Below, piece by piece: positions 47,578 through 61,412 of a stretch of 64,000 nucleotides of DNA. The stretch is from positions 75,950,001-76,014,000 of the forward strand of contig NC_086375.1 in NCBI RefSeq assembly GCF_036588685.1, written 5' to 3'. The position numbers and the translations under genes are program-made. Numbering within the stretch: the stretch's first letter is position 1; each line of letters begins with the position of its first letter. This DNA is from Mytilus trossulus. Lineage: Eukaryota. The notes under the pieces are model-generated. The model did no database searches and was not told the DNA's origin. It worked only from the letters and a program-made list of their open reading frames with translations.

Positions 47578-47706
47578 CTAGTTTATTCTACTTGGAAAAA
47601 ATGGTAGTCCTCTTATAAATTCATCAAGTTTTGTTTGAAATAGTTCACTTGTTATTGGTTTATCTAAGTCACATACTGGATTCCGTACAACATATTCCAC
47701 ATATAT
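47578..47706 (-). CDS. TRAPPC1: TRAPPC1/BET5 last coding exon (129 bp)
   Basis: TTTCAG acceptor, then IYVEYVVRNPVCDLDKPITSELFQTKLDEFIRGLPFFPSRIN*, matching the TRAPPC1 C-terminus (LYVELVVKNP..SELF..LD..LPFF). Confidence 0.95.
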   Translation of the reverse strand: MYVEYVVRNPVCDLDKPITSELFQTKLDEFIRGLPFFPSRIN

Positions 47707-47950
47707 CTGAAATAGACAATAGAGAAAATAAGTGCAGTTAGTATACATTGAATAATAATTGTTTAATTTTTTATCTAAGCAGTATATTTGCTCAAAATTT
47801 CAAAGATTAAAACATCTAGAAATTTTGCTAAAGCATAGATGATACTCATGTATCATTCACCTTGCAAGTTTACCCCCTAGTGTTTCTTACAGGATGATTC
47901 AGTGTGGTATGGCGATCTGCTATTATTTCTCGACACCCTGTCCATTTTAG

Positions 47951-50725
47951 AACCAGATGCTCCGCAGGGCGTAGCTTTATACGACTGCAGGGTTGAACCC
48001 TGAACGGTTGGGGCAATTATGGACACAACATTCAAGCTGGATTCAGCTCTTAATTTGGATTGTGATTAAATAGTTGACACAGCATAGGTTTCTGACACAG
48101 AATGAATGTGTTCTAATGAACTTAAAATTTTTGTTTTCTCTTAGAGCAATTCACTATGGTGTTGAATATTAATCCTCTCAAAAAAATGTTTAAAGAAATT
48201 TTCTATTTATTTATGAAATTTCAAATGAGAAAATTGAACCCAATTTTTTTAATCACATCCCCCTTTCCCTTATTCTAAAACTAATCTCAATCAAAATTTC
48301 TAATGGAGTTTGCAACAACAACTACTCATTCAAATACATCATAAAATATTAAGATGTAAAAAAACTGCTTGTTTAATATCACTGAATGGTAAAGATTATT
48401 TTAATTTATCAGATGGTAGTAAAAAGTGAATATACATTGTATATTGTATATAACAAAGATTTAAGTTGATTCTGGACAAAGAAAGATAACTCCAAATAAA
48501 ACAAATCTTGAAATTAGATATTTCTTGCTTACTATTCTGGACAAAGAAAGATAACTCTAATTAAAAAAAAAATTGCTATTTCACAATATTGTGCAATTAG
48601 ATATTTCTTGCCATTGCGCAATACTGTGCAATTGAAAAGACTTGCTATTGCACATTGCACAATACTTAATATATTAATTTCAGATCCTGATTTGAACCAA
48701 CTTGAAAACTGGGCCCATAATCAAAAATCTAAGTACATGTTTGGATTCAGCATATCAAAGAACCCCAACTTTAAATTTTTGTTAAAATCAAACTTAGATT
48801 TAATTTTGGACCCTTTGGACTTTAATGTAGGCCAATTTGAAAACAGGACCAACCAGATGCTCCGCAGGGCGTAGCTTTATACGACCGCAGAGGTTGAACC
48901 CTGAACGGTTGGGGCAAGTATGGACACAACATTCAAGCTGGATTCAGCTCTAAATTTGGATTGTGATTAAATAGTTGACACAGCATAGGTTTCTGACACA
49001 GAATGAATGTATTCAAATGAACTTAAAATTTTTGTTTTCTCTTAGAGCAATTCACTATGCTGTTGAATATTAATCCTCTCAAAAAAATGTTTGAAGAAAT
49101 TTTCTTTTTATTTATGAAATTTCAAATGAGAAAAATTGAACCCAATTTTTTAATCACATCCCCCTTTCCCTTATTCCAAAACTAATTTCAATTAAAATAT
49201 TCTAATGGAGTTTGCAACAATTACTACTCATTTAAATACATCATAAAATATTAAGATGTAAAAAAACTGCTTGTTATCACTGAATGGTAAAGATTATTTA
49301 AATTTATCAGTTGGTAGTAAAAAGTGAATATACATTGTATATTGTATATAACAAAGATTTAAGTTGATTCTGGACAAAGAAAGATAACTCCAATTAAAAA
49401 AAAATCTTGCAGATATTTCTTGCTTACTATACTGGACAAAGAAAGATAACTCTTAATTAAAAAAAATTTTGCTATTTCACAATATTGTGAAATTAGATAT
49501 TTCTTGCCATTGCACAATACTGTGCAATTGAAAAGACTTGCTATTGCACAAAACTTAATATAATAATTTTAGATCCTGATTTGGACCAATTTGAAAACTG
49601 GGCCCATAATCAAAAATCTAAGTACATGTTTAGATTCAGCATATCAAAGAGGCCCAAGAATTTAATTTTTGTTAAAATCAAACTTAGTTTAATTTTGGAC
49701 CCTTTGCACTTTAATTTAGACCAATTTTAAAACTGGACCAAAAATTAAGAATCTACATACACAGTTAGATTTGGCATATCAAAGAACCCCAATTATTCAA
49801 TTTTTGATGAAATCAAACAATGTTTAATTTTGGACCTCAATATGGACCAACTTGAAAACTGGGCCAATAATCAAAAATCTTAGTACATTTTTAGATTCAG
49901 CATATCAAAGAACTCAAAGGTTTTAATTTTTGTTAAAATCAAACTAAGTTTAATTTTGGACCCTTTGGACCTTAATGTAGACCAATTTGAAAACGGGACC
50001 AAAAATTAAGAATCTACATACACAGTTAGATTCGGCATATTAAAGAACCCCAATTATTCAATTTTGATGAAATCAAACAAAATTTAATTTTGGACCCTTT
50101 GGGCCCCTTTTTCCTTAACTGTTGGGACCAAAACTCCCAAAATCAATACCAACCTTCCTTTAATAGTCATAAACCTTGTGTTTAAATTTCATAGATTTCT
50201 ATTTACTTATACTAACGCTATGGTGAGAAAACCAAGAAAAATGCTTATTTGGGTCCCTTTTTGGCCCCTAATTCCTAAACTGTTGGGACCGAAACTCCCA
50301 AAATCAATACCAACCTTCCTTTTGTAATCATAAACATTGTGTTTAAATTTCATAAATTTCTATTTACTTTAACTTAAGTTATTGTGCGAAAACCAAGAAT
50401 AATGCTTATTTGGGCCCTTTTTTGGCCCCTAATTCCTAAACTGTTGAAACCAAAACTCCCAAAATCAATCCCAACCTTTCTTTTGTGGTCATAAACCTTG
50501 TGTCAAAATTTCATAGATTTCTATTAACTTAAACTTAAGTTATAGTGCGAAAACCAAGAAAATGCTTATTTGGGCCCTTTTTGGCCCCTAATTCCTAAAA
50601 TGTTGGGACCAAAACTCCCAAAATCAATACCAGCCTTCCTTTTATGGTCATAAACCTTGTGTTAAAATTTCATAGATTTCTATTCACTTTTACTAAAGTT
50701 AGAGTGCGAAAACTAAAAGTATTCG

Positions 50726-50769
<44 letters not shown>

Positions 50770-51895
50770 CAACGTGATAGCAATATACGACGAAAATTTT
50801 TTTAAAATTTGCGGTCGTATAAAAATGAAGAATTTACATACCGGTACACAGTTAGATTTGGCATATCAAAGAACCCCATTTATTCAATTTTTGATGAAAT
50901 CAAACAAAGGTTAATTTTGGACCCCGATTTGGACCAACTTGAAAACTGGGCCAATAATCAAGAATCTAAGTACATTTTTAGATACAGCATATCAAAGAAC
51001 CCAACCGATTCATTTTTTGTCAAAATCAAACTAAGTTTAATTTTGGACCCTTTGGACCTAAATGTAGACCAATTTGAAAACGGGACCAAAAGTTAAGAAT
51101 CTACATACACAGTTAGATTCGGCATATCAAAGAACCCCAATTATTCAATTTTGATGAAATCAAACAAAGTTTAATTTTGGACCCTTTGGGCCCCTCATTC
51201 CTAAACGGTTGGAACCAAAACTCCCAAAATCAATATCAACCTTCCTTTTATGGTCATAAACCTTGTGTTTAAATTTCATAGATTTCTATTTACTTATACT
51301 AACGTTATGGTGCAAAAACCAAGAAAAATGCTTATTTGGGTCCCTTTTTGGCCCCTTATTCCTAAACAAATGGGACCTTAACTCCCAAAATCAATACCAA
51401 CCTTCCTTTTGTGGTCATAAACATTGTGTCTAAATTTCATAGATTTCTATTAACTTAAAACTAAAGTTATTGTGCAAAAACCAAGAATAATGCTTATTTG
51501 GGCCCTTTTTTGGCCCCTTATTCCTAAACTGTTGAAACCAAAACTCCCAAAATCATTCCCAACATTTCTTTTGTGGTCATAAACCTTGTGTCAAAATTTC
51601 ATAGATTTCTTTTAACTTAAACTAATGTTATAGTGCGAAAACCAAGAAAATGCTTATTTGGGCCCTTTTTGGCCCCTAATTCCTATAATGTTGGGACCAA
51701 AACTCCCAAAATCAATACCAACCTTCCTTTTGTGGTCATAAACCTTGTGTTAAAATTTCATAGATTTCTATTCACTTTTACTAAAGTTAGAGTGCGAAAA
51801 CTAAAAGTATTCGGACGACGACGACGCAGACAACGACGCCGACGTGATAGCAATATACGACGAAATTTTTTTCAAATTTTGCGGTCGTATAAAAA
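47951..51895. mobile_element. Helentron-type non-autonomous element (outer copy) in TRAPPC1 intron
   Basis: Starts AACCAGATGCTCCGCAGGGCG; subterminal IR TATACGAC(T/C)GCA / TGCGGTCGTATA; terminal hairpin; ~160-bp internal tandem repeats; (GAC)n; ends in A-run. Confidence 0.8.
48851..50825. mobile_element. Second copy of the same Helentron-type element nested in the first
   Basis: Same start and end sequences as the outer copy; about four 160-bp repeats at 50090-50700; (GAC)14 at 50726-50767. Confidence 0.85.
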
Positions 51896-52337
51896 CCAAT
51901 TGGCCCCTTTTTACTCCATAGAAGATAAATTCTTTCTTATTCAACTTTAGACAGCTTTGTTCTTTTAATAAATGACCTCAAGCTTTTAGACAAATTATTC
52001 AATGAGAAGTCCAAATTGCATTTGGCACTTTTCCACCGACTAGAAGGCTAGAAAGTTTATACATATATGTAAAGGACCTTTAATACATCCTTCCTGTTAG
52101 TATGGTTAAAACTAAATTCTTAGTTGACTGACTGACTGACCTACATGGGGGGCCAGTCATGCTTCAGCAATTCCCTATATAACCAACCAACTTTTTTTCC
52201 AACAAAAGGGGGGCCAGGAAATGCACTGTATTATTGATTGGTTTAACCAATTGTTCTATTAGCATGATTGGTAAAATAACAAAATGCACATTAAAATATT
52301 TTAAACACATTAATATTCGAACTACAGATGACCTTAA

Positions 52338-52888
52338 GGGGGCTCCTGGGTATAAATGAATTTTTTTTTCTAATATAGGATTTAGCTATATTTTTTCATA
52401 AATGAACTTTATCATATACTTAAACGAAAAATGAAATAAAAAAATGGGGTCACCGTTCATTTAAGCTAAAATCTGCCTCTGGGAGAAGCATACATTTTTG
52501 TTAATGTCCTTTTTTTCTGTTGAACTAATAGGAGAAAAAGAGGAAATAAAAAAATAAAAAAATAACCTAATATAAGAAATCGCTTAAATTTTACAATTAT
52601 TTAGTTTATGTACAGCTTATTTGAAAACAATAATAAAAAATATAGGTCACCGATGAGTTAAAAAAGATATTTCAAATTTAAGGCCAAAAAATGGAATTTT
52701 TGCACCAAAGGGAGATAATTTGGAGCTTTTTCAATTTTTAAAGTCATCTGGGGCCAAACCAAATAATTTTGTTGGGTTGTTTTTTGTACCATATCATAAA
52801 GTAACAACTAATAGTGTAACAAATAAAATTTGTAATGAAAAAATTAAGGTTTAATTTTTTGCTAAAATTTTTGTACCCACGATCCACC
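52338..52888. mobile_element. MITE with TTAA TSD (Kolobok-like)
   Basis: TTAA|GGGGGCTCCTGGGTATAAA ... TTTGTACCCACGATCCACC|TTAA, imperfect TIR. Confidence 0.7.
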
Positions 52889-53065
52889 TTAACACACCTG
52901 CAAGTAAACCTATAATAACCCATATCATATCACAGAATGTTCTAAGTTACTGAAAGCAAGTGTTTAAAATAATCTGCTAATGTAGAAATCATGCATAAAA
53001 GTGCAGATATAGCTTTATTTGTTAAAAGAAATCATTAGGCACATGTTTTGGTTTTTTTCTCCCAT

Positions 53066-56000
53066 TAATCAGAAGCATGATACTTACATTACTGTATATC
53101 TGATGAAGAGTGTCCCTAATCAGAAGCCCTATAGTGATACTTACATTACTGTATATCTGATGAAGAGTGTCCCTAATCAGAAGCCCTATAGTGATACTTA
53201 CATTACTGTATATCTGATGAAGAGTGTCCCATAGTGATACTTACATTACTGTATATCTGATGAAGAGTGTCCCTAATCAGAAGTCCTATAGTGATACTTA
53301 CATTACTGTATATCTGATGAAGAGTGTCCCTAATCAGAAGCCCGATAGTGATACTTACATTACTGTATATCTGATGAAGAGTGTCCCTAATCAGAAGCCC
53401 TATAGTGATACTTACATTACTGTATATCTGATGAAGAGTGTCCCTAATCAGAAGCCCTATAGTGATACTTACATTACTGTATATCTAATGAAGAGTGTCC
53501 CTAATCAGAAGCCCTATAGTGATACTTACATTACTGTATATCTGATGAAGAGTGTCCCTAATCAGAAGCCCTATAGTGATACTTACATTACTGTATATCT
53601 GATGAAGAGTGTCCCTAATCAGAAGCCTTATAGTGATACTTACATTACTGTATATCTGATGAAGAGTGTCCCTAATCAGAAGCCCTATAGTGATACTTAC
53701 ATTACTGTATATCTGATGAAGAGTGTCCCTAATCAGAAGCCCTATAGTGATACTTACATTACTGTATATCTGATGAAGAGTGTCCCTAATCAGAAGCCCT
53801 ATAGTGATACTTACATTACTGTATATCTGACGAAGAGTGTCCCTAATCAGAAGCCCTATAGTGATACTTACATTACTGTATATCTGATGAAGAGTGTCCC
53901 TAATCAGAAGCCCTATAGTGATACTTACATTACTGTATATCTGATGAAGAGTGTCCCTAATCAGAAGCCCGATAGTGATACTTACATTACTGTATATCTG
54001 ATGAAGAGTGTCCCTAATCAGAAGCCCTATAGTGATACTTACATTACTGTATATCTGATGAAGAGTGTCCCTAATCAGAAGCCCTATACTTACATTACTG
54101 TATATCTGATGAAGAGTGTCCCTAATCAGAAGCCCTATAGTGATACTTACATTACTGTATATCTGATGAAGAGTGTCCCTAATCAGAAGCCCTATAGTGA
54201 TACTTACATTACTGTATATCTGATGAAGAGTGTCCCTAATCAGAAGCCCTATAGTGATACTTACATTACTGTATATCTGATGAAGAGTGTCCCTAATCAG
54301 AAGCCCGATAGTGATACTTACATTACTGTATATCTGATGAAGAGTGTCCCTAATCAGAAGCCCGATAGTGATACTTACATTACTGTATATCTGATGAAGA
54401 GTGTCCCTAATCAGAAGCCCTATAGTGATACTTACATTACTGTATATCTGATGAAGAGTGTCCCTAATCAGAAGCCCGATAGTGATACTTACATTACTGT
54501 ATATCTTATGAAGAGTGTCCCTAATCAGAAGCCCGATAGTGATACTTACATTACTGTATATCTGATGAAGAGTGTCCCTAATCAGAAGCCCTATAGTGAT
54601 ACTTACATTACTGTATATCTGATGAAGAGTGTCCCTAATCAGAAGCCCGATAGTGATACTTACATTACTGTATATCTGATGAAGAGTGTCCCTAATCAGA
54701 AGCCCGATAGTGATACTTACATTACTGTATATCTGATGAAGAGTGTCCCTAATCAGAAGCCCTATAGTGATACTTACATTACTGTATATCTGATGAAGAG
54801 TGTCCCTAATTAGAAGCCCTATAGTGATACTTACATTACTGTATATCTGATGAAGAGTGTCCCTAATCAGAAGCCCGATAGTGATACTTACATTACTGTA
54901 TATCTGATGAAGAGTGTCCCTAATCAGAAGCCCGATAGTGATACTTACATTACTGTATATCTGATGAAGAGTGTCCCTAATCAGAAGCCCTATAGTGATA
55001 CTTACATTACTGTATATCTGATGAAGAGTGTCCCTAATCAGAAGCCCGATAGTGATACTTACATTACTGTATATCTGATGAAGAGTGTCCCTAATCAGAA
55101 GCCCGATAGTGATACTTACATTACTGTATATCTGATGAAGAGTGTCCCTAATCAGAAGCCCGATAGTGATACTTACATTACTGTATATCTGATGAAGAGT
55201 GTCCCTAATCAGAAGCCCTATAGTGATACTTACATTACTGTATATCTGATGAAGAGTGTCCCTAATCAGAAGCCCTATAGTGATACTTACATTACTGTAT
55301 ATCTGATGAAGAGTGTCCCTAATCAGAAGCCCTATAGTGATACTTACATTACTGTATATCTGATGAAGAGTGTCCCTAATCAGAAGTCCTATAGTGATAC
55401 TTACATTACTGTATATCTGATGAAGAGTGTCCCTAATCAGAAGCCCGATAGTGATACTTACATTACTGTATATCTGATGAAGAGTGTCCCTAATCAGAAG
55501 TCCTATAGTGATACTTACATTACTGTATATCTGATGAAGAGTGTCCCTAATCAGAAGCCCTATAGTGATACTTACATTACTGTATATCTGATGAAGAGTG
55601 TCCCTAATCAGAAGCCCTATAGTGATACTTACATTACTGTATATCTGATGAAGAGTGTCCCTAATCAGAAGCCCTATAGTGATACTTACATTACTGTATA
55701 TCTGATGAAGAGTGTCCCTAATCAGAAGCCCTATAGTGATACTTACATTACTGTATATCTGATGAAGAGTGTCCCTAATCAGAAGCCCGATAGTGATACT
55801 TACATTACTGTATATCTGATGAAGAGTGTCCCTAATCAGAAGCCTTATAGTGATACTTACATTACTGTATATCTGATGAAGAGTGTCCCTAATCAGAAGC
55901 CCTATAGTGATACTTACATTACTGTATATCTGATGAAGAGTGTCCCTAATCAGAAGCCCTATAGTGATACTTACATTACTGTATATCTGATGAAGAGTGT

Positions 56001-59000
56001 CCCTAATCAGAAGCCCGATAGTGATACTTACATTACTGTATATCTGATGAAGAGTGTCCCTAATCAGAAGCCCGATAGTGATACTTACATTACTGTATAT
56101 CTGATGAAGAGTGTCCCTAATCAGAAGCCTTATAGTGATACTTACATTACTGTATATCTGATGAAGAGTGTCCCTAATCAGAAGCCCTATAGTGATACTT
56201 ACATTACTGTATATCTGATGAAGAGTGTCCCTAATCAGAAGCCCTATAGTGATACTTACATTACTGTATATCTGATGAAGAGTGTCCCTAATCAGAAGCC
56301 CTATAGTGATACTTACATTACTGTATATCTGATGAAGAGTGTCCCTAATCAGAAGCCCTATAGTGATACTTACATTACTGTATATCTGATGAAGAGTGTC
56401 CCTAATCAGAAGCCCTATAGTGATACTTACATTACTGTATATCTGATGAAGAGTGTCCCTAATCAGAAGCCCTATAGTGATACTTACATTACTGTATATC
56501 TGATGAAGAGTGTCCCTAATCAGAAGCCCGATAGTGATACTTACATTACTGTATATCTGATGAAGAGTGTCCCTAATCAGAAGCCCTATAGTGATACTTA
56601 CATTACTGTATATCTGATGAAGAGTGTCCCTAATCAGAAGCCCTATAGTGATACTTACATTACTGTATATCTGATGAAGAGTGTCCCTAATCAGAAGCCC
56701 GATAGTGATACTTACATTACTGTATATCTGATGAAGAGTGTCCCTAATCAGAAGCCCGATAGTGATACTTACATTACTGTATATCTGATGAAGAGTGTCC
56801 CTAATCAGAAGCCCTATAGTGATACTTACATTACTGTATATCTGATGAAGAGTGTCCCTAATCAGAAGCCCTATAGTGATACTTACATTACTGTATATCT
56901 GATGAAGAGTGTCCCTAATCAGAAGCCCGATAGTGATACTTACATTACTGTATATCTGATGAAGAGTGTCCCTAATCAGAAGCCCTATAGTGATACTTAC
57001 ATTACTGTATATCTGATGAAGAGTGTCCCTAATCAGAAGCCCGATAGTGATACTTACATTACTGTATATCTGATGAAGAGTGTCCCTAATCAGAAGCCCG
57101 ATAGTGATACTTACATTACTGTATATCTGATGAAGAGTGTCCCTAATCAGAAGCCCGATAGTGATACTTACATTACTGTATATCTGATGAAGAGTGTCCC
57201 TAATCAGAAGCCCTATAGTGATACTTACATTACTGTATATCTGATGAAGAGTGTCCCTAATCAGAAGCCCGATAGTGATACTTACATTACTGTATATCTG
57301 ATGAAGAGTGTCCCTAATCAGAAGCCCGATAGTGATACTTACATTACTGTATATCTGATGAAGAGTGTCCCTAATCAGAAGCCCGATAGTGATACTTACA
57401 TTACTGTATATCTGATGAAGAGTGTCCCTAATCAGAAGCCCTATAGTGATACTTACATTACTGTATATCTGATGAAGAGTGTCCCTTATCAGAAGCCCGA
57501 TAGTGATACTTACATTACTGTATATCTGATGAAGAGTGTCCCTAATCAGAAGCCCTATAGTGATACTTACATTACTGTATATCTGATGAAGAGTGTCCCT
57601 AATCAGAAGCCCGATAGTGATACTTACATTACTGTATATCTGATGAAGAGTGTCCCTAATCAGAAGCCCGATAGTGATACTTACATTACTGTATATCTGA
57701 TGAAGAGTGTCCCTAATCAGAAGCCCGATAGTGATACTTACATTACTGTATATCTGATGAAGAGTGTCCCTAATCAGAAGCCCTATAGTGATACTTACAT
57801 TACTGTATATCTGATGAAGAGTGTCCCTAATCAGAAGCCCGATAGTGATACTTACATTACTGTATATCTGATGAAGAGTGTCCCTAATCAGAAGCCCGAT
57901 AGTGATACTTACATTACTGTATATCTGATGAAGAGTGTCCCTAATCAGAAGCCCGATAGTGATACTTACATTACTGTATATCTGATGAAGAGTGTCCCTA
58001 ATCAGAAGCCCGATAGTGATACTTACATTACTGTATATCTGATGAAGAGTGTCCCTAATCAGAAGCCCGATAGTGATACTTACATTACTGTATATCTGAT
58101 GAAGAGTGTCCCTAATCAGAAGCCCGATAGTGATACTTACATTACTGTATATCTGATGAAGAGTGTCCCTAATCAGAAGCCCGATAGTGATACTTACATT
58201 ACTGTATATCTGATGAAGAGTGTCCCTAATCAGAAGCCCGATAGTGATACTTACATTACTGTATATCTGATGAAGAGTGTCCCATAGTGATACTTACATT
58301 ACTGTATATCTGATGAAGAGTGTCCCTAATCAGAAGTCCTATAGTGATACTTACATTACTGTATATCTGATGAAGAGTGTCCCTAATCAGAAGCCCTATA
58401 GTGATACTTACATTACTGTATATCTGATGAAGAGTGTCCCTAATCAGAAGTCCTATAGTGATACTTACATTACTGTATATCTGATGAAGAGTGTCCCTAA
58501 TCAGAAGCCCTATAGTGATACTTACATTACTGTATATCTGATGAAGAGTGTCCCTAATCAGAAGCCCTATAGTGATACTTACATTACTGTATATCTGATG
58601 AAGAGTGTCCCATAGTGATACTTACATTACTGTATATCTGATGAAGAGTGTCCCATAGTGATACTTACATTACTGTATATCTGATGAAGAGTGTCCCTAA
58701 TCAGAAGCCCGATAGTGATACTTACATTACTGTATATCTGATGAAGAGTGTCCCATAGTGATACTTACATTACTGTATATCTGATGAAGAGTGTCCCTAA
58801 TCAGAAGCCCGATAGTGATACTTACATTACTGTATATCTGATGAAGAGTGTCCCTAATCAGAAGCCCGATAGTGATACTTACATTACTGTATATCTGATG
58901 AAGAGTGTCCCTAATCAGAAGCCCGATAGTGATACTTACATTACTGTATATCTGATGAAGAGTGTCCCTAATCAGAAGCCCTATAGTGATACTTACATTA

Positions 59001-59809
59001 CTGTATATCTGATGAAGAGTGTCCCTAATCAGAAGCCCTATAGTGATACTTACATTACTGTATATCTGATGAAGAGTGTCCCTAATCAGAAGCCCGATAG
59101 TGATACTTACATTACTGTATATCTGATGAAGAGTGTCCCTAATCAGAAGTCCTATAGTGATACTTACATTACTGTATATCTGATGAAGAGTGTCCCTAAT
59201 CAGAAGCCCGATAGTGATACTTACATTACTGTATATCTGATGAAGAGTGTCCCTAATCAGAAGCCCGATAGTGATACTTACATTACTGTATATCTGATGA
59301 AGAGTGTCCCTAATCAGAAGCCCGATAGTGATACTTACATTACTGTATATCTGATGAAGAGTGTCCCTAATCAGAAGCCCTATAGTGATACTTACATTAC
59401 TGTATATCTGATGAAGAGTGTCCCTAATCAGAAGCCCTATAGTGATACTTACATTACTGTATATCTGATGAAGAGTGTCCCTAATCAGAAGCATGATACT
59501 TACATTACTGTATATCTGATGAAGAGTGTCCCTAATCAGAAGCATGATACTTACATTACTGTATATCTGATGAAGAGTGTCCCTAATCAGAAGCATGATA
59601 CTTACATTACTGTATATCTGATGAAGAGTGTCCCTAATCAGAAGCCCGATAGTGATACTTACATTACTGTATATCTGATGAAGAGTGTCCCTAATCAGAA
59701 GCCCCATAGTGAGACTTACATTACTGTATATCTGATGAAGAGTGTCCCTAATCAGAAGCCCGATAGTGATACTTACATTACTGTATATCTGATGAAGAGT
59801 GTCCCTAAT
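53066..59809 (-). repeat. Minisatellite of about 120 units (57 bp; rare 51- and 43-bp variants) made of the TRAPPC1 exon 3 / intron 3 junction
   Basis: Minus-strand unit: ATTAGGGACACTCTTCATCAGATATACAGTAAT|GTAAGTATCACTAT(A/C)GGGCTTCTG; the first 33 nt are identical to the end of the exon at 59777-59809; array length fits 110x57 + 5x51 + 5x43. Confidence 0.98.
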
Positions 59810-59915
59810 ATTTCCAACACCAAGGTCTGTATTTATCACGATCTTCAGTCCAGATGGGGTTTCATAAAAATGGAGTTTGTATTTGTTTGTCTTAAAATTC
59901 AAAAATCCATCTTTT
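59777..59915 (-). CDS. TRAPPC1: TRAPPC1/BET5 coding exon 3 (139 bp)
   Basis: CTAG acceptor, KDGFLNFKTNKYKLHFYETPSGLKIVINTDLGVGNIRDTLHQIYSN, GTAAGT donor; phase-compatible with flanking exons. Confidence 0.95.
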
Positions 59916-60581
59916 CTAGTTATAAGTCAAGGAAATCAAGTATACAATATATAAAAGACATGACACATTATTAATAAAATTTGTTTTTTTTCTAAATTTG
60001 GGGTTGTTTTTAAGAAAAGTGCTTGATGTTTATTTTTTTTTACATAAATCAGGCTATTTGTTTTTTGGTTTTGAATTGTTTGCAATTAACATTTCAAAAG
60101 TGGATCCAGAATATAAAACTTAACCAACATTTTCAGTGAAACAGGTAAAAAGAATGAATTAACCATTTAACAATAAATGTTGTGTCATTAGTGAGGGAGG
60201 TCTGGGCAGCTGTATTTGTCATGCCATGTCAAGCTTGTATAACAAACTATGCAGTTAGTATGGGTTTTGCTAATTGTTGAATGCACTATTGTGAACTATA
60301 GTTCCTTTGGTCTTTGGTGGAAAGTTGTATCATTGGCAATCATACCTAATATATTATTTTCATGTCTATAATTGTTGACTGTTAATCATAACAAATCTGA
60401 GCTCCATAGTAAAATTTCAAGAATATTTCTATAGTATATTGTTTTGTTTTTTGAATATATTTTTTTCAATTGGGATGGTATTTTATAAATTGTAAAATCA
60501 AATTAAGAGACAACGCTCTCGGAGTATGTTAATAATCTTCAATTATTCAAGGATAGCTAGCTATATAATATAGGACTTTAA

Positions 60582-60846
60582 GGTGGTACCTAACCCTACA
60601 GGGAGATAACTCTGTAAAGTCAGCTAAACGTTTTAATTACATTGTGTTGTAAAAGGAATATTAAGCTTCTCAATGATCAAAATTGGTGTTTGTCAAACTG
60701 CTATATAAACAGTGTAATTTTTCTGACAAAACGGTTGGTTCATAAATTTTTATATTTTCGTTAAAGGGTCAAAGTAAATAATTTGACCAAATTTTATGAA
60801 AATTAAACAAGCCAAATTAATTTTAGTGAAAGTGTTGGGTACCACC
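60582..60846. mobile_element. MITE with TTAA TSD (Kolobok-like), 265 bp
   Basis: TTAA|GGTGGTACCTAAC ... GTTGGGTACCACC|TTAA. Confidence 0.8.
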
Positions 60847-61025
60847 TTAAAGAAGAATATGTTCATTCATTGTACATGTAAGGTTTTTTAAATTGAAATA
60901 CTGGCATTTGATGTATATTTAAAAGTCTTGCCTTCTTGCATAGTGATACATGTTGGGGTTAGTTTAATAAAGAATCATTGAACATTTAAATGATAAAGTA
61001 ATTTTCCTGAATTCTATAAGGATAC

Positions 61026-61096
61026 AAATCTGCTGGTGATATCCTACTGACAAACGACTTGATGGAATGTATCATACCATACATCAATTTAAACTC
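61026..61096 (-). CDS. TRAPPC1: TRAPPC1/BET5 coding exon 2 (71 bp)
   Basis: TTTGCAG acceptor, EFKLMYGMIHSIKSFVSRISPADL, GT donor in phase 2; matches TRAPPC1 EYKLMYGMLFSIRSFVSKMSP. Confidence 0.95.
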
Positions 61097-61137
61097 CTGC
61101 AAAATATATATATCATTACATTTTGTGCAATAATTAT

Positions 61138-61412
61138 AGATTATCGTTGATTATCTCAACGAGATTGATTTTCTCGCTTGAGCTGGAACAGCGAAAGTGA
61201 GAAAAGGAATCGAGTTGAGATGACCAATGATAATCTGTTTATCGCCATTTTACCTATATATGAGACGTTGTCAATTTAAATGTCAATTTCGTTAGCAACG
61301 CCATGTGACCTCCTTAGTTTCTAGCAATAATTTTTCCATATCAAGCGAGTAGCATGATATGAAAATTATCACAAAAAAAGATCAAAGGAAAAATGCACAA
61401 AATAGCGATAAA
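61138..61412. repeat. Short hairpin-rich element
   Basis: AGATTATCGTTG..TCTCAAC..TTTTCTC pairs imperfectly with GAGAAAA..GTTGAGA..CAATGATAATCT; second IR TTTATCGCCATTT / AAATAGCGATAAA. Confidence 0.5.

Follow-up and report, generated by a model that had tools for sequence, protein, structure and literature searches.

Intron 3 of TRAPPC1, a conserved housekeeping gene of the mussel Mytilus trossulus, opens with a minisatellite in which the tail of exon 3, along with the adjoining splice donor, is repeated head to tail, such that the pre-mRNA of the gene carries 120 donors that are identical in their local context. The array lies on the minus strand of a 64,000-nt stretch of contig NC_086375.1 (NCBI RefSeq assembly GCF_036588685.1, positions 75,950,001 to 76,014,000), hereafter called the window, in whose coordinates positions are given unless another contig is named. 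We consider it highly probable that this is a young, microhomology-seeded intronic variable number tandem repeat (VNTR), which is removed together with intron 3, leaves a normal 145-residue protein and is close to neutral in its effect.

On sequence comparison, the host gene is the TRAPPC1 (Bet5) orthologue, encoding a Sybindin-domain protein of about 145 residues: Every exon piece matches the Pfam family Sybindin (PF04099), exon 3 matches the TRAPPC1 chain 2j3t_C of the PDB (E 1e-19, residues 58-102), and the four exon translations, which were searched and compared one by one rather than as a joined coding sequence, are identical to XP_063425945.1, a TRAPPC1-like protein of 145 amino acids from M. 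trossulus (Table 1). Exon 1 lies 2.1 kb beyond the end of the window.

Anatomy and origin of the array

The array extends over 6,744 nt (53066-59809), a figure that the sum of the unit lengths matches exactly, and the window that contains it has no N runs. Tandem Repeats Finder describes a single array at 53078-59809 with a period of 57 (also 114 and 171) and 96-98% matches. An earlier note on this DNA, made from the sequence alone, had proposed about 120 tandem copies of a donor built from the TRAPPC1 exon 3/intron junction, each with the last 33 nt of the exon followed by AAT/GTAAGT (here and below a slash marks a boundary) and none with a mutated GTAAGT. The count is exactly 120: GTAAGT occurs on the minus strand of the array as one authentic donor and 119 copies, all of them intact, and a script run on that strand found the 16-nt context ATACAGTAAT/GTAAGT to be exact at 120 of 120 donors, with the 8-mer GTAAGTAT at 119 of them. 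The identity of the donors in the pre-mRNA, which the note had also claimed, extends over at least 57 nt of context. Its description of the unit stands, but for two corrections: gene and donors alike belong to the minus strand, and unit length is not uniform. Donor-to-donor spacing is 57 nt in 110 cases, 51 nt in four and 43 nt in five, and the last unit is again of the 51-nt type.

Each 57-nt unit consists of the last 33 nt of exon 3 and 24 nt of intron, and in each unit the open reading frame ends in ...CAGATATACAGTAAT, followed by GTAAGTATCA... The first 19 donors share the frame of exon 3; after donor 19 (G at 58768) comes a 43-nt interval, which puts donor 20 (G at 58725) and all those beyond it in another frame. 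Seventeen unit variants are present, two of which, both 57 nt long and differing at one site, make up 46 and 45 units. Variant units come back in blocks, the internal variant map is non-periodic, and the sequence on both flanks of the array is unique. Such an array cannot be the product of chance. Mean pairwise identity among the units is 98.3% with 10 of 57 positions variable, and these values, together with the recurrence of variants in blocks, are typical of a young or homogenised minisatellite.

The boundaries of the array bear on how it arose. On the exon side the boundary reads GGAAAT/ATTAGGG, the internal junctions all read CTTCTG/ATTAGGG, and the far end reads CTTCTG/ATTAATGGGAG, with ATTA common to the exon-side boundary and to the 3' boundary at the far end. 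Units of 51 nt stand at both edges, as the last unit, which continues into unique intron sequence, and as units 4-6 (after donors 4-6) near the 5' edge; the interior is made up of the 57-nt derivative, with 43-nt derivatives at five places. As ATTA stands at both ends of an ancestral 51-nt segment (33 exon and 18 intron nt), we infer a microhomology-mediated tandem duplication. The array would have started as a 51-nt duplication across the exon 3/intron 3 junction, probably seeded by the 4-nt microhomology ATTA, after which a 57-nt variant would have expanded to 120 units through slippage and unequal exchange. The duplicated segment begins in the exon and ends in the intron, and hence all copies after the first fall wholly inside intron 3.

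Assembly and genomic distribution of the unit

Assemblies are notoriously prone to error at tandem arrays, and it is conceivable that the copy number has been inflated or that the array has been misplaced. Against this stand the depths of contigs assembled independently from DNA sequencing runs and held in the Logan collection. In run X1 the unit contig has a depth of 1387 against about 25 for the unique flanks, a ratio of about 55, and in run X2, which carries another organism label, the depth is 407 against about 4, a ratio of about 107. Contig depth is not a copy number and both ratios must be read with that caution; nevertheless, the ratio in X1 agrees with the assembly, where that variant accounts for roughly 55-60 units. 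The non-periodic variant map, the unique flanks on both sides and the correct gene structure around the array likewise argue against an artefact, which we regard as very unlikely.

The unit is confined to this one locus. When a 171-nt unit query was searched against the 1.3-Gb genome, all 54 of its 54 matches fell within this array. The absence of the unit from every other locus of the genome means that it is neither a dispersed satellite nor a repeat borne by a transposon, and both of these candidates were rejected. An exact scan of metagenome contigs with a 24-mer made of the exon end and the donor gave no match.

Donor choice

The product on record contains one copy of the exon tail. The junction ...HQIYSN/IYVEYV... 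is present in XP_063425945.1 and in its orthologues from M. californianus and M. galloprovincialis, and a search of 5.8 billion proteins with exon 3 extended by 99 repeat-encoded residues found the repeat peptide in none of 72 TRAPPC1 relatives (hits of 80-254 amino acids). Since the major product has a single exon-tail copy, donor 1 must be joined to the acceptor 12,070 nt downstream, in keeping with the expectation of the earlier note that the first donor has to be picked; the 145-residue protein requires it.

Evidence from RNA comes from Logan contigs of two runs, X11 and X14, in both of which exon 2 is joined to exon 3 (59915 to 61026, with GT..AG ends). In X14 the depth over exon 3 is 55-106 and over unit 2 it is zero. 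In X11 the unit contig has a depth of 56, the exon 31.5 and a contig of intron 2 has 4.3, and the presence of the unit contig together with that of intron 2 indicates that this run contains unspliced RNA or DNA. The unit contig in X11 could be pre-mRNA, lariat, contaminating DNA or transcripts that contain the repeat. The exon contig of X11 ends 3 nt short of the end of exon 3, a stop that we infer to be a branch point of the 31-mer graph, where exon and array share sequence. Taken for the major product, use of donor 1 with exon 4 fits the protein model and the RNA contigs over exon 3 and unit 2, the exon 3-exon 4 junction itself not being among the contigs seen. In arrays of this kind it is as a rule the donor farthest upstream, or the first few, that serve in vivo, and the product on record conforms to this.

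How donor 1 might prevail over 119 identical competitors can be outlined as follows. First-come kinetics alone would be insufficient, since the acceptor is transcribed only after the last of the 120 donors. Instead, exon definition, acting over the 139 nt of exon 3, would commit donor 1 immediately on its transcription; the spliceosome would pair it with the acceptor 12 kb downstream, the other 119 donors would leave in the lariat, and surplus U1 would be displaced as the A complex forms. Under such a mechanism the array would be near neutral and would act at most by its length, as has been reported for human ABCA7.

Another reading is that the array generates isoforms, with donors 2-19 adding blocks of 17 or 19 residues to TRAPPC1 and the later donors producing frameshifted targets of nonsense-mediated decay (NMD). 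The 19 in-frame donors could add up to 1008 nt, and in the human genes IFI6 and CBS the first two pseudo-sites are used (PMC1557585). However, the repeat peptide is missing from the proteins on record, unit 2 is without a contig in X14, and an insert would sit inside the conserved Sybindin domain of a 145-residue subunit of a complex. The run of in-frame donors is, moreover, an automatic consequence of units of 57 and 51 nt. We give this reading hardly any credence. A separate candidate, that the donors are recursive splice sites (ratchet points), was rejected, as every donor is preceded by CAGTAAT, with no pyrimidine tract and AG abutting it.

Related arrays in human genes

The earlier note held that no such array had been described, which is not the case. 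Borensztajn et al. (2006) reported minisatellites in human genes whose first monomer spans an exon-intron boundary (PMC1557585), among them that in intron 7 of F7 (37 bp, 5-9 copies). Experiments showed that only the most upstream donor of F7 is used, that the pseudo-sites work once the sites upstream of them are inactivated, and that the choice of donor shifts only to a downstream site of perfect consensus (PMC1557585). As in F7, the first monomer of the TRAPPC1 array spans the boundary, identical donors are repeated in the intron and the upstream-most is used, here at least for the major product. The TRAPPC1 array differs from F7 in having 120 copies rather than 5-9, 33 rather than 4 exon nucleotides in each unit, and the donor GTAAGTAT in place of the weak TGG/GTGGGT. 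F7 is also a vertebrate gene for which the choice of donor has been proved by experiment, whereas the mussel array is known from sequence and contigs.

Further cases are cited in the same source (PMC1557585). Intron 2 of IFI6 (6-16) has 25 pseudo-sites, the first two of which are used besides the authentic donor, and intron 13 of CBS has 15-20 repeats, with two pseudo-sites used besides the authentic donor. Both have a donor that is repeated, 15-25 times in their case, and both, like the present array, use the upstream-most sites; in IFI6 and CBS, however, the first two pseudo-sites are used constitutively, in contrast to TRAPPC1, for which no such product is on record. LMNB2 (100 bp, 10-15 repeats) and intron 4 of PDGFA (81 bp, 16-18 repeats) are described as using the authentic donor only, and so resemble TRAPPC1, at least in its major product, in combining a junction-spanning array with sole use of the authentic site; they have about a tenth of its copies.

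A further relative is the VNTR in intron 18 of ABCA7, which begins at the donor GT and consists of some 12 to some 427 units of 25 bp, reaching up to 10.7 kb (PMC5954066). A cryptic donor there allows a single additional unit to be retained, and the length of the VNTR is linked to disease risk, lower expression and skipping of exon 19. Like the TRAPPC1 array, whose size falls within its range, it is a large intronic VNTR that starts at a splice donor; unlike it, the ABCA7 unit is C-rich, begins at the GT and is devoid of exon sequence.

The TRAPPC1 array therefore belongs with those of F7, IFI6, CBS, LMNB2, PDGFA and ABCA7: it is a head-to-tail array whose first unit contains the end of a real, expressed exon with its donor, and the donor is repeated unchanged in the intron. 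It is notable for its copy number, for the strength of its donor and for the exon context, 33 nt long, that every unit carries.

A different relationship between tandem repeats and introns was reportedly proposed by Zhuo and colleagues in PNAS in 2007, namely that introns in human genes are born from tandem arrays and that arrays within exons make new alternative introns. Both cases involve tandem repeats inside genes that bear splice-site motifs, but the TRAPPC1 case would differ in that here a pre-existing intron simply grew.

Selection and regulation

The strength of the donor can be judged against the U1 RNA of this genome, whose genes start with ATACTTACCTGG, the canonical 5' end. Against this 5' end, GTAAGTAT can form an unbroken run of eight base pairs (+1 to +8); there is pairing at -2 as well, with mismatches at -1 and -3. 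Full-length U1 small nuclear RNA (snRNA) genes number at least 42 at G000:C14:50057228-50217257 (L017-L020), with scores of 146-148 bits, and most of them follow one another head to tail about every 1.3 kb.

That all 120 copies of GTAAGT are intact might suggest that the donors are held by purifying selection. The probability that 10 variable positions out of 57 would all miss GTAAGT by chance is 0.30, and that they would all miss -3 to +6 is 0.15. With so few positions of the unit variable, intact donors are not evidence of selection, and purifying selection on them was rejected. When four units were folded as RNA, they were no more stable than shuffled sequences (z = +0.8), and no masking structure was found.

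It has to be considered whether the array regulates its own gene in cis, such that up to 120 U1 small nuclear ribonucleoproteins (snRNPs) bound to the nascent intron, or the 6.7 kb of added length alone, would tune TRAPPC1 output, splicing or exon skipping according to copy number. The pairing of 119 of 120 units with the U1 of this genome over eight contiguous base pairs is in line with such a role, as are the observation that U1 can bind each of two strong donors on one RNA in complex E (PMC3413131), the reported effect of VNTR length on ABCA7 expression and alternative splicing (PMC5954066), and the unequal relative depths of the unit contig in X1 and X2 (about 55 and about 107 times). However, the RNA of the unit has no special fold, and the conservation of the donors is no greater than expected for a young array. 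Regulation in cis is accordingly judged improbable, if less so than an assembly artefact or the generation of isoforms.

In mammalian cells a few thousand extra binding sites are negligible against the cellular pool of U1. Given the size of that pool, an effect of the array in trans as a U1 sponge is implausible. The suggestions of the earlier note that the array binds many U1 snRNPs, tunes expression through NMD or yields a ladder of isoforms have gained no support.

Gene context and other features

The features of the TRAPPC1 locus are collected in Table 1, together with arrays of donor motifs elsewhere in the genome for which a gene match is available. Beyond the minisatellite, intron 3 holds two blocks of about 3.9 copies each of a 161-162-nt repeat, at 50089-50713 and 51176-51801, with 87-88% matches and 1.1 kb apart, and the first of these is followed by a perfect microsatellite, (GAC)14, at 50726-50768. 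The two blocks look like copies of a composite element that bears repeats. Dispersed repeats of very high copy occupy 60302-60355, 60578-60850 and 61130-61200, in intron 2 of TRAPPC1 and upstream, where the summed contig depth in DNA run X1 reaches 0.5-1.6 million against about 25 for unique sequence; the element boundaries show as sharp loose ends at 60578, 60850 and 61130. Two third-codon positions of exon 3, 59810 and 59840, read differently in the RNA contig of X11 and in the window; both changes are synonymous (AAT to AAC and ATC to ATT), which fits another individual or population, whether of this species or of a close one.

Table 1. Features of the TRAPPC1 locus (positions in the window) and donor-motif arrays with gene matches elsewhere in the genome
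Feature	Position	Strand	Evidence and remarks
Minisatellite, 120 units	53066..59809	-	Tandem Repeats Finder, donor script, unit map, genome search, contig depth
Exon-derived part of repeat unit 1 (exon 3 last 33 nt)	59809-59777	-	Sequence
Authentic donor 1, AAT/GTAAGTAT	59769..59776	-	Sequence; +1 to +8 complementary to U1 snRNA nt 1-8
Donors 1-19, in frame with exon 3, stop-free	58725..59776	-	Frame analysis
Last unit, 51-nt type, 3' boundary ...CTTCTG/ATTAATGGGAG	53066..53120	-	Sequence
TRAPPC1 exon 2, 71 nt, EFKLMYGM...SPAD, donor GTATCC	61026..61096	-	Pfam Sybindin E 1e-4; identical to XP_063425945.1 residues 34-56
TRAPPC1 exon 3, 139 nt	59777..59915	-	Pfam Sybindin E 1.5e-11; RNA contig depth 31-106; identical to XP_063425945.1 residues 58-103
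TRAPPC1 intron 3, 12,070 nt	47707..59776	-	Array, two 161-bp repeat blocks, (GAC)14
Intron 3 acceptor: TACTAAC at 47743-47737, then pyrimidine tract, TTTCAG/	47707 end	-	Sequence
TRAPPC1 last coding exon, IYVEYVVRNP...SRIN then stop	47578..47706	-	Pfam Sybindin E 2.5e-10; identical to XP_063425945.1 residues 104-145
AATAAA	47536-47531	-	Sequence
L023, KRI1, 33 donors, 66 nt			Pfam 1.5e-15
L024, FARSA, 4 donors			PDB 3e-15
L026, RTCB, 16 donors			PDB 0.003
L030, Alg9-like mannosyltransferase, 37 donors			Pfam 1.5e-14
L036, voltage-gated calcium-channel gene, 4 donors, 75 nt			Pfam Ion_trans 3e-5
L037, same calcium-channel gene as L036, 10 donors, 110 nt			Pfam GPHH 0.004 (below cut-off)

Donor-motif arrays across the genome

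Whether the TRAPPC1 array is a single accident or one outcome of a wider process depends on how often strong donors occur in arrays, for which 8-mers were counted across the whole genome wherever they formed periodic triples spaced 43-73 nt. The strong donor GTAAGTAT gave 5560 matches, as against 532 for its reverse TATGAATG, 998 for the composition-matched control TGATAGTA and 1040 for the reverse of that control, ATGATAGT, even though GTAAGTAT is rarer in single occurrences than its reverse (73,993 and 101,235). A second strong donor, GTGAGTAT, gave 883 matches and its reverse TATGAGTG gave 671. Counted as loci on contig C1 (113.5 Mb), there are at least 8 for GTAAGTAT in the first 33.4 Mb and 6-7 for GTGAGTAT in the first 36.9 Mb, compared with 7 for TGATAGTA and 5-8 for TATGAATG, depending on how close neighbours are split, over the whole contig, an excess of donor-motif loci of roughly 3.5-fold. 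A homology-supported exon runs to the last codon before the first donor in 6 of 15 donor arrays examined on C1; four more of the 15 resemble plain satellites, with no open frame leading up to them.

These counts lend some rough support to the suggestion of the earlier note that a mutational process amplifies exon-intron junctions, at the level that so crude a test allows. Such a process would make junctions preferred birthplaces or safe havens for minisatellites, either because mutation is biased towards them or because selection favours units that bind U1 where introns are long and AT-rich, and the excess of GTAAGTAT triples, the locus counts on C1 and the arrays that directly follow a homology-supported exon end all point in its direction. 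There are, however, several considerations that point the other way: Firstly, matches for GTGAGTAT are only 1.3 times those of its reversed control. Secondly, a few large arrays dominate the match counts, and the control motifs number only three. Thirdly, the motif count was made without gene annotation, so that it contains no comparison of donors with acceptors or with random intron positions. Finally, a genome rich in minisatellites would yield many junction arrays by chance. A junction-biased process is thus possible but doubtful, and it is only tentatively that junction minisatellites may be called common, and perhaps over-represented, in this mussel genome. It would be compatible with the handling of the TRAPPC1 transcript set out above, though not with a one-off neutral accident.

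Some individual arrays deserve mention in their own right. The two arrays in the calcium-channel gene (L036 and L037) lie 20 kb apart, and a second array with donor-like units stands 2 kb upstream of that in RTCB (L026). On the same chromosome as the TRAPPC1 array there are a 72-nt array with GTAAGTAT units, of which 13.5 copies fall within the piece examined (L021, G000:C3:52323733-52328044), and another with a period of 51 nt, 13.5 copies and GGGTAAAT units (a GTAAAT donor), for which no exon is shown (L022, G000:C3:72700443-72703134). An array of more than 8 kb with 64-nt units, GTAAGTAT and a higher-order pattern occupies approximately G000:C1:33348021-33363000 (covered in part by L029); it is a plain satellite with no open frame ahead of its first donor, and it swells the number of donor-motif matches.

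The view that the TRAPPC1 array is a near-neutral VNTR, discarded with its intron, must be weighed against a number of observations that sit less easily with it. The rough genome-wide excess of strong-donor arrays hints at more than a neutral accident, and one of the possible origins of the unit contig in X11 is a transcript that contains the repeat. The RNA evidence consists entirely of Logan contigs, which drop rare variants and do not show ends, and a low use of donors 2, 3 and beyond is possible.

Implications

Taken alone, the TRAPPC1 array is a striking but explainable case of a class that has been known in human genes since the 1980s-1990s, and it is the first that we could document in a mollusc housekeeping gene. 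It is extreme in its 120 copies and in what each unit carries, namely exon context of 33 nt and a donor that pairs with U1 over 8 contiguous positions. As such, it offers an exacting test, set up by nature, of upstream-most donor choice as a rule, as opposed to the preference for intron-proximal donors seen in vitro. Loci of this kind will also trip gene predictors and short-read assemblers.

The recurrence of junction arrays across conserved genes of this genome raises the possibility that exon-intron junctions are hot spots for minisatellites. If that were true, from tens to more than 100 identical strong donors would lie downstream of the real one in hundreds of genes, including many conserved housekeeping genes, which would suggest that mutation is biased towards junctions or that selection favours units able to bind U1 in introns that are long and AT-rich. 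The mussel would then offer a natural allelic series on how the spliceosome chooses among identical donors.

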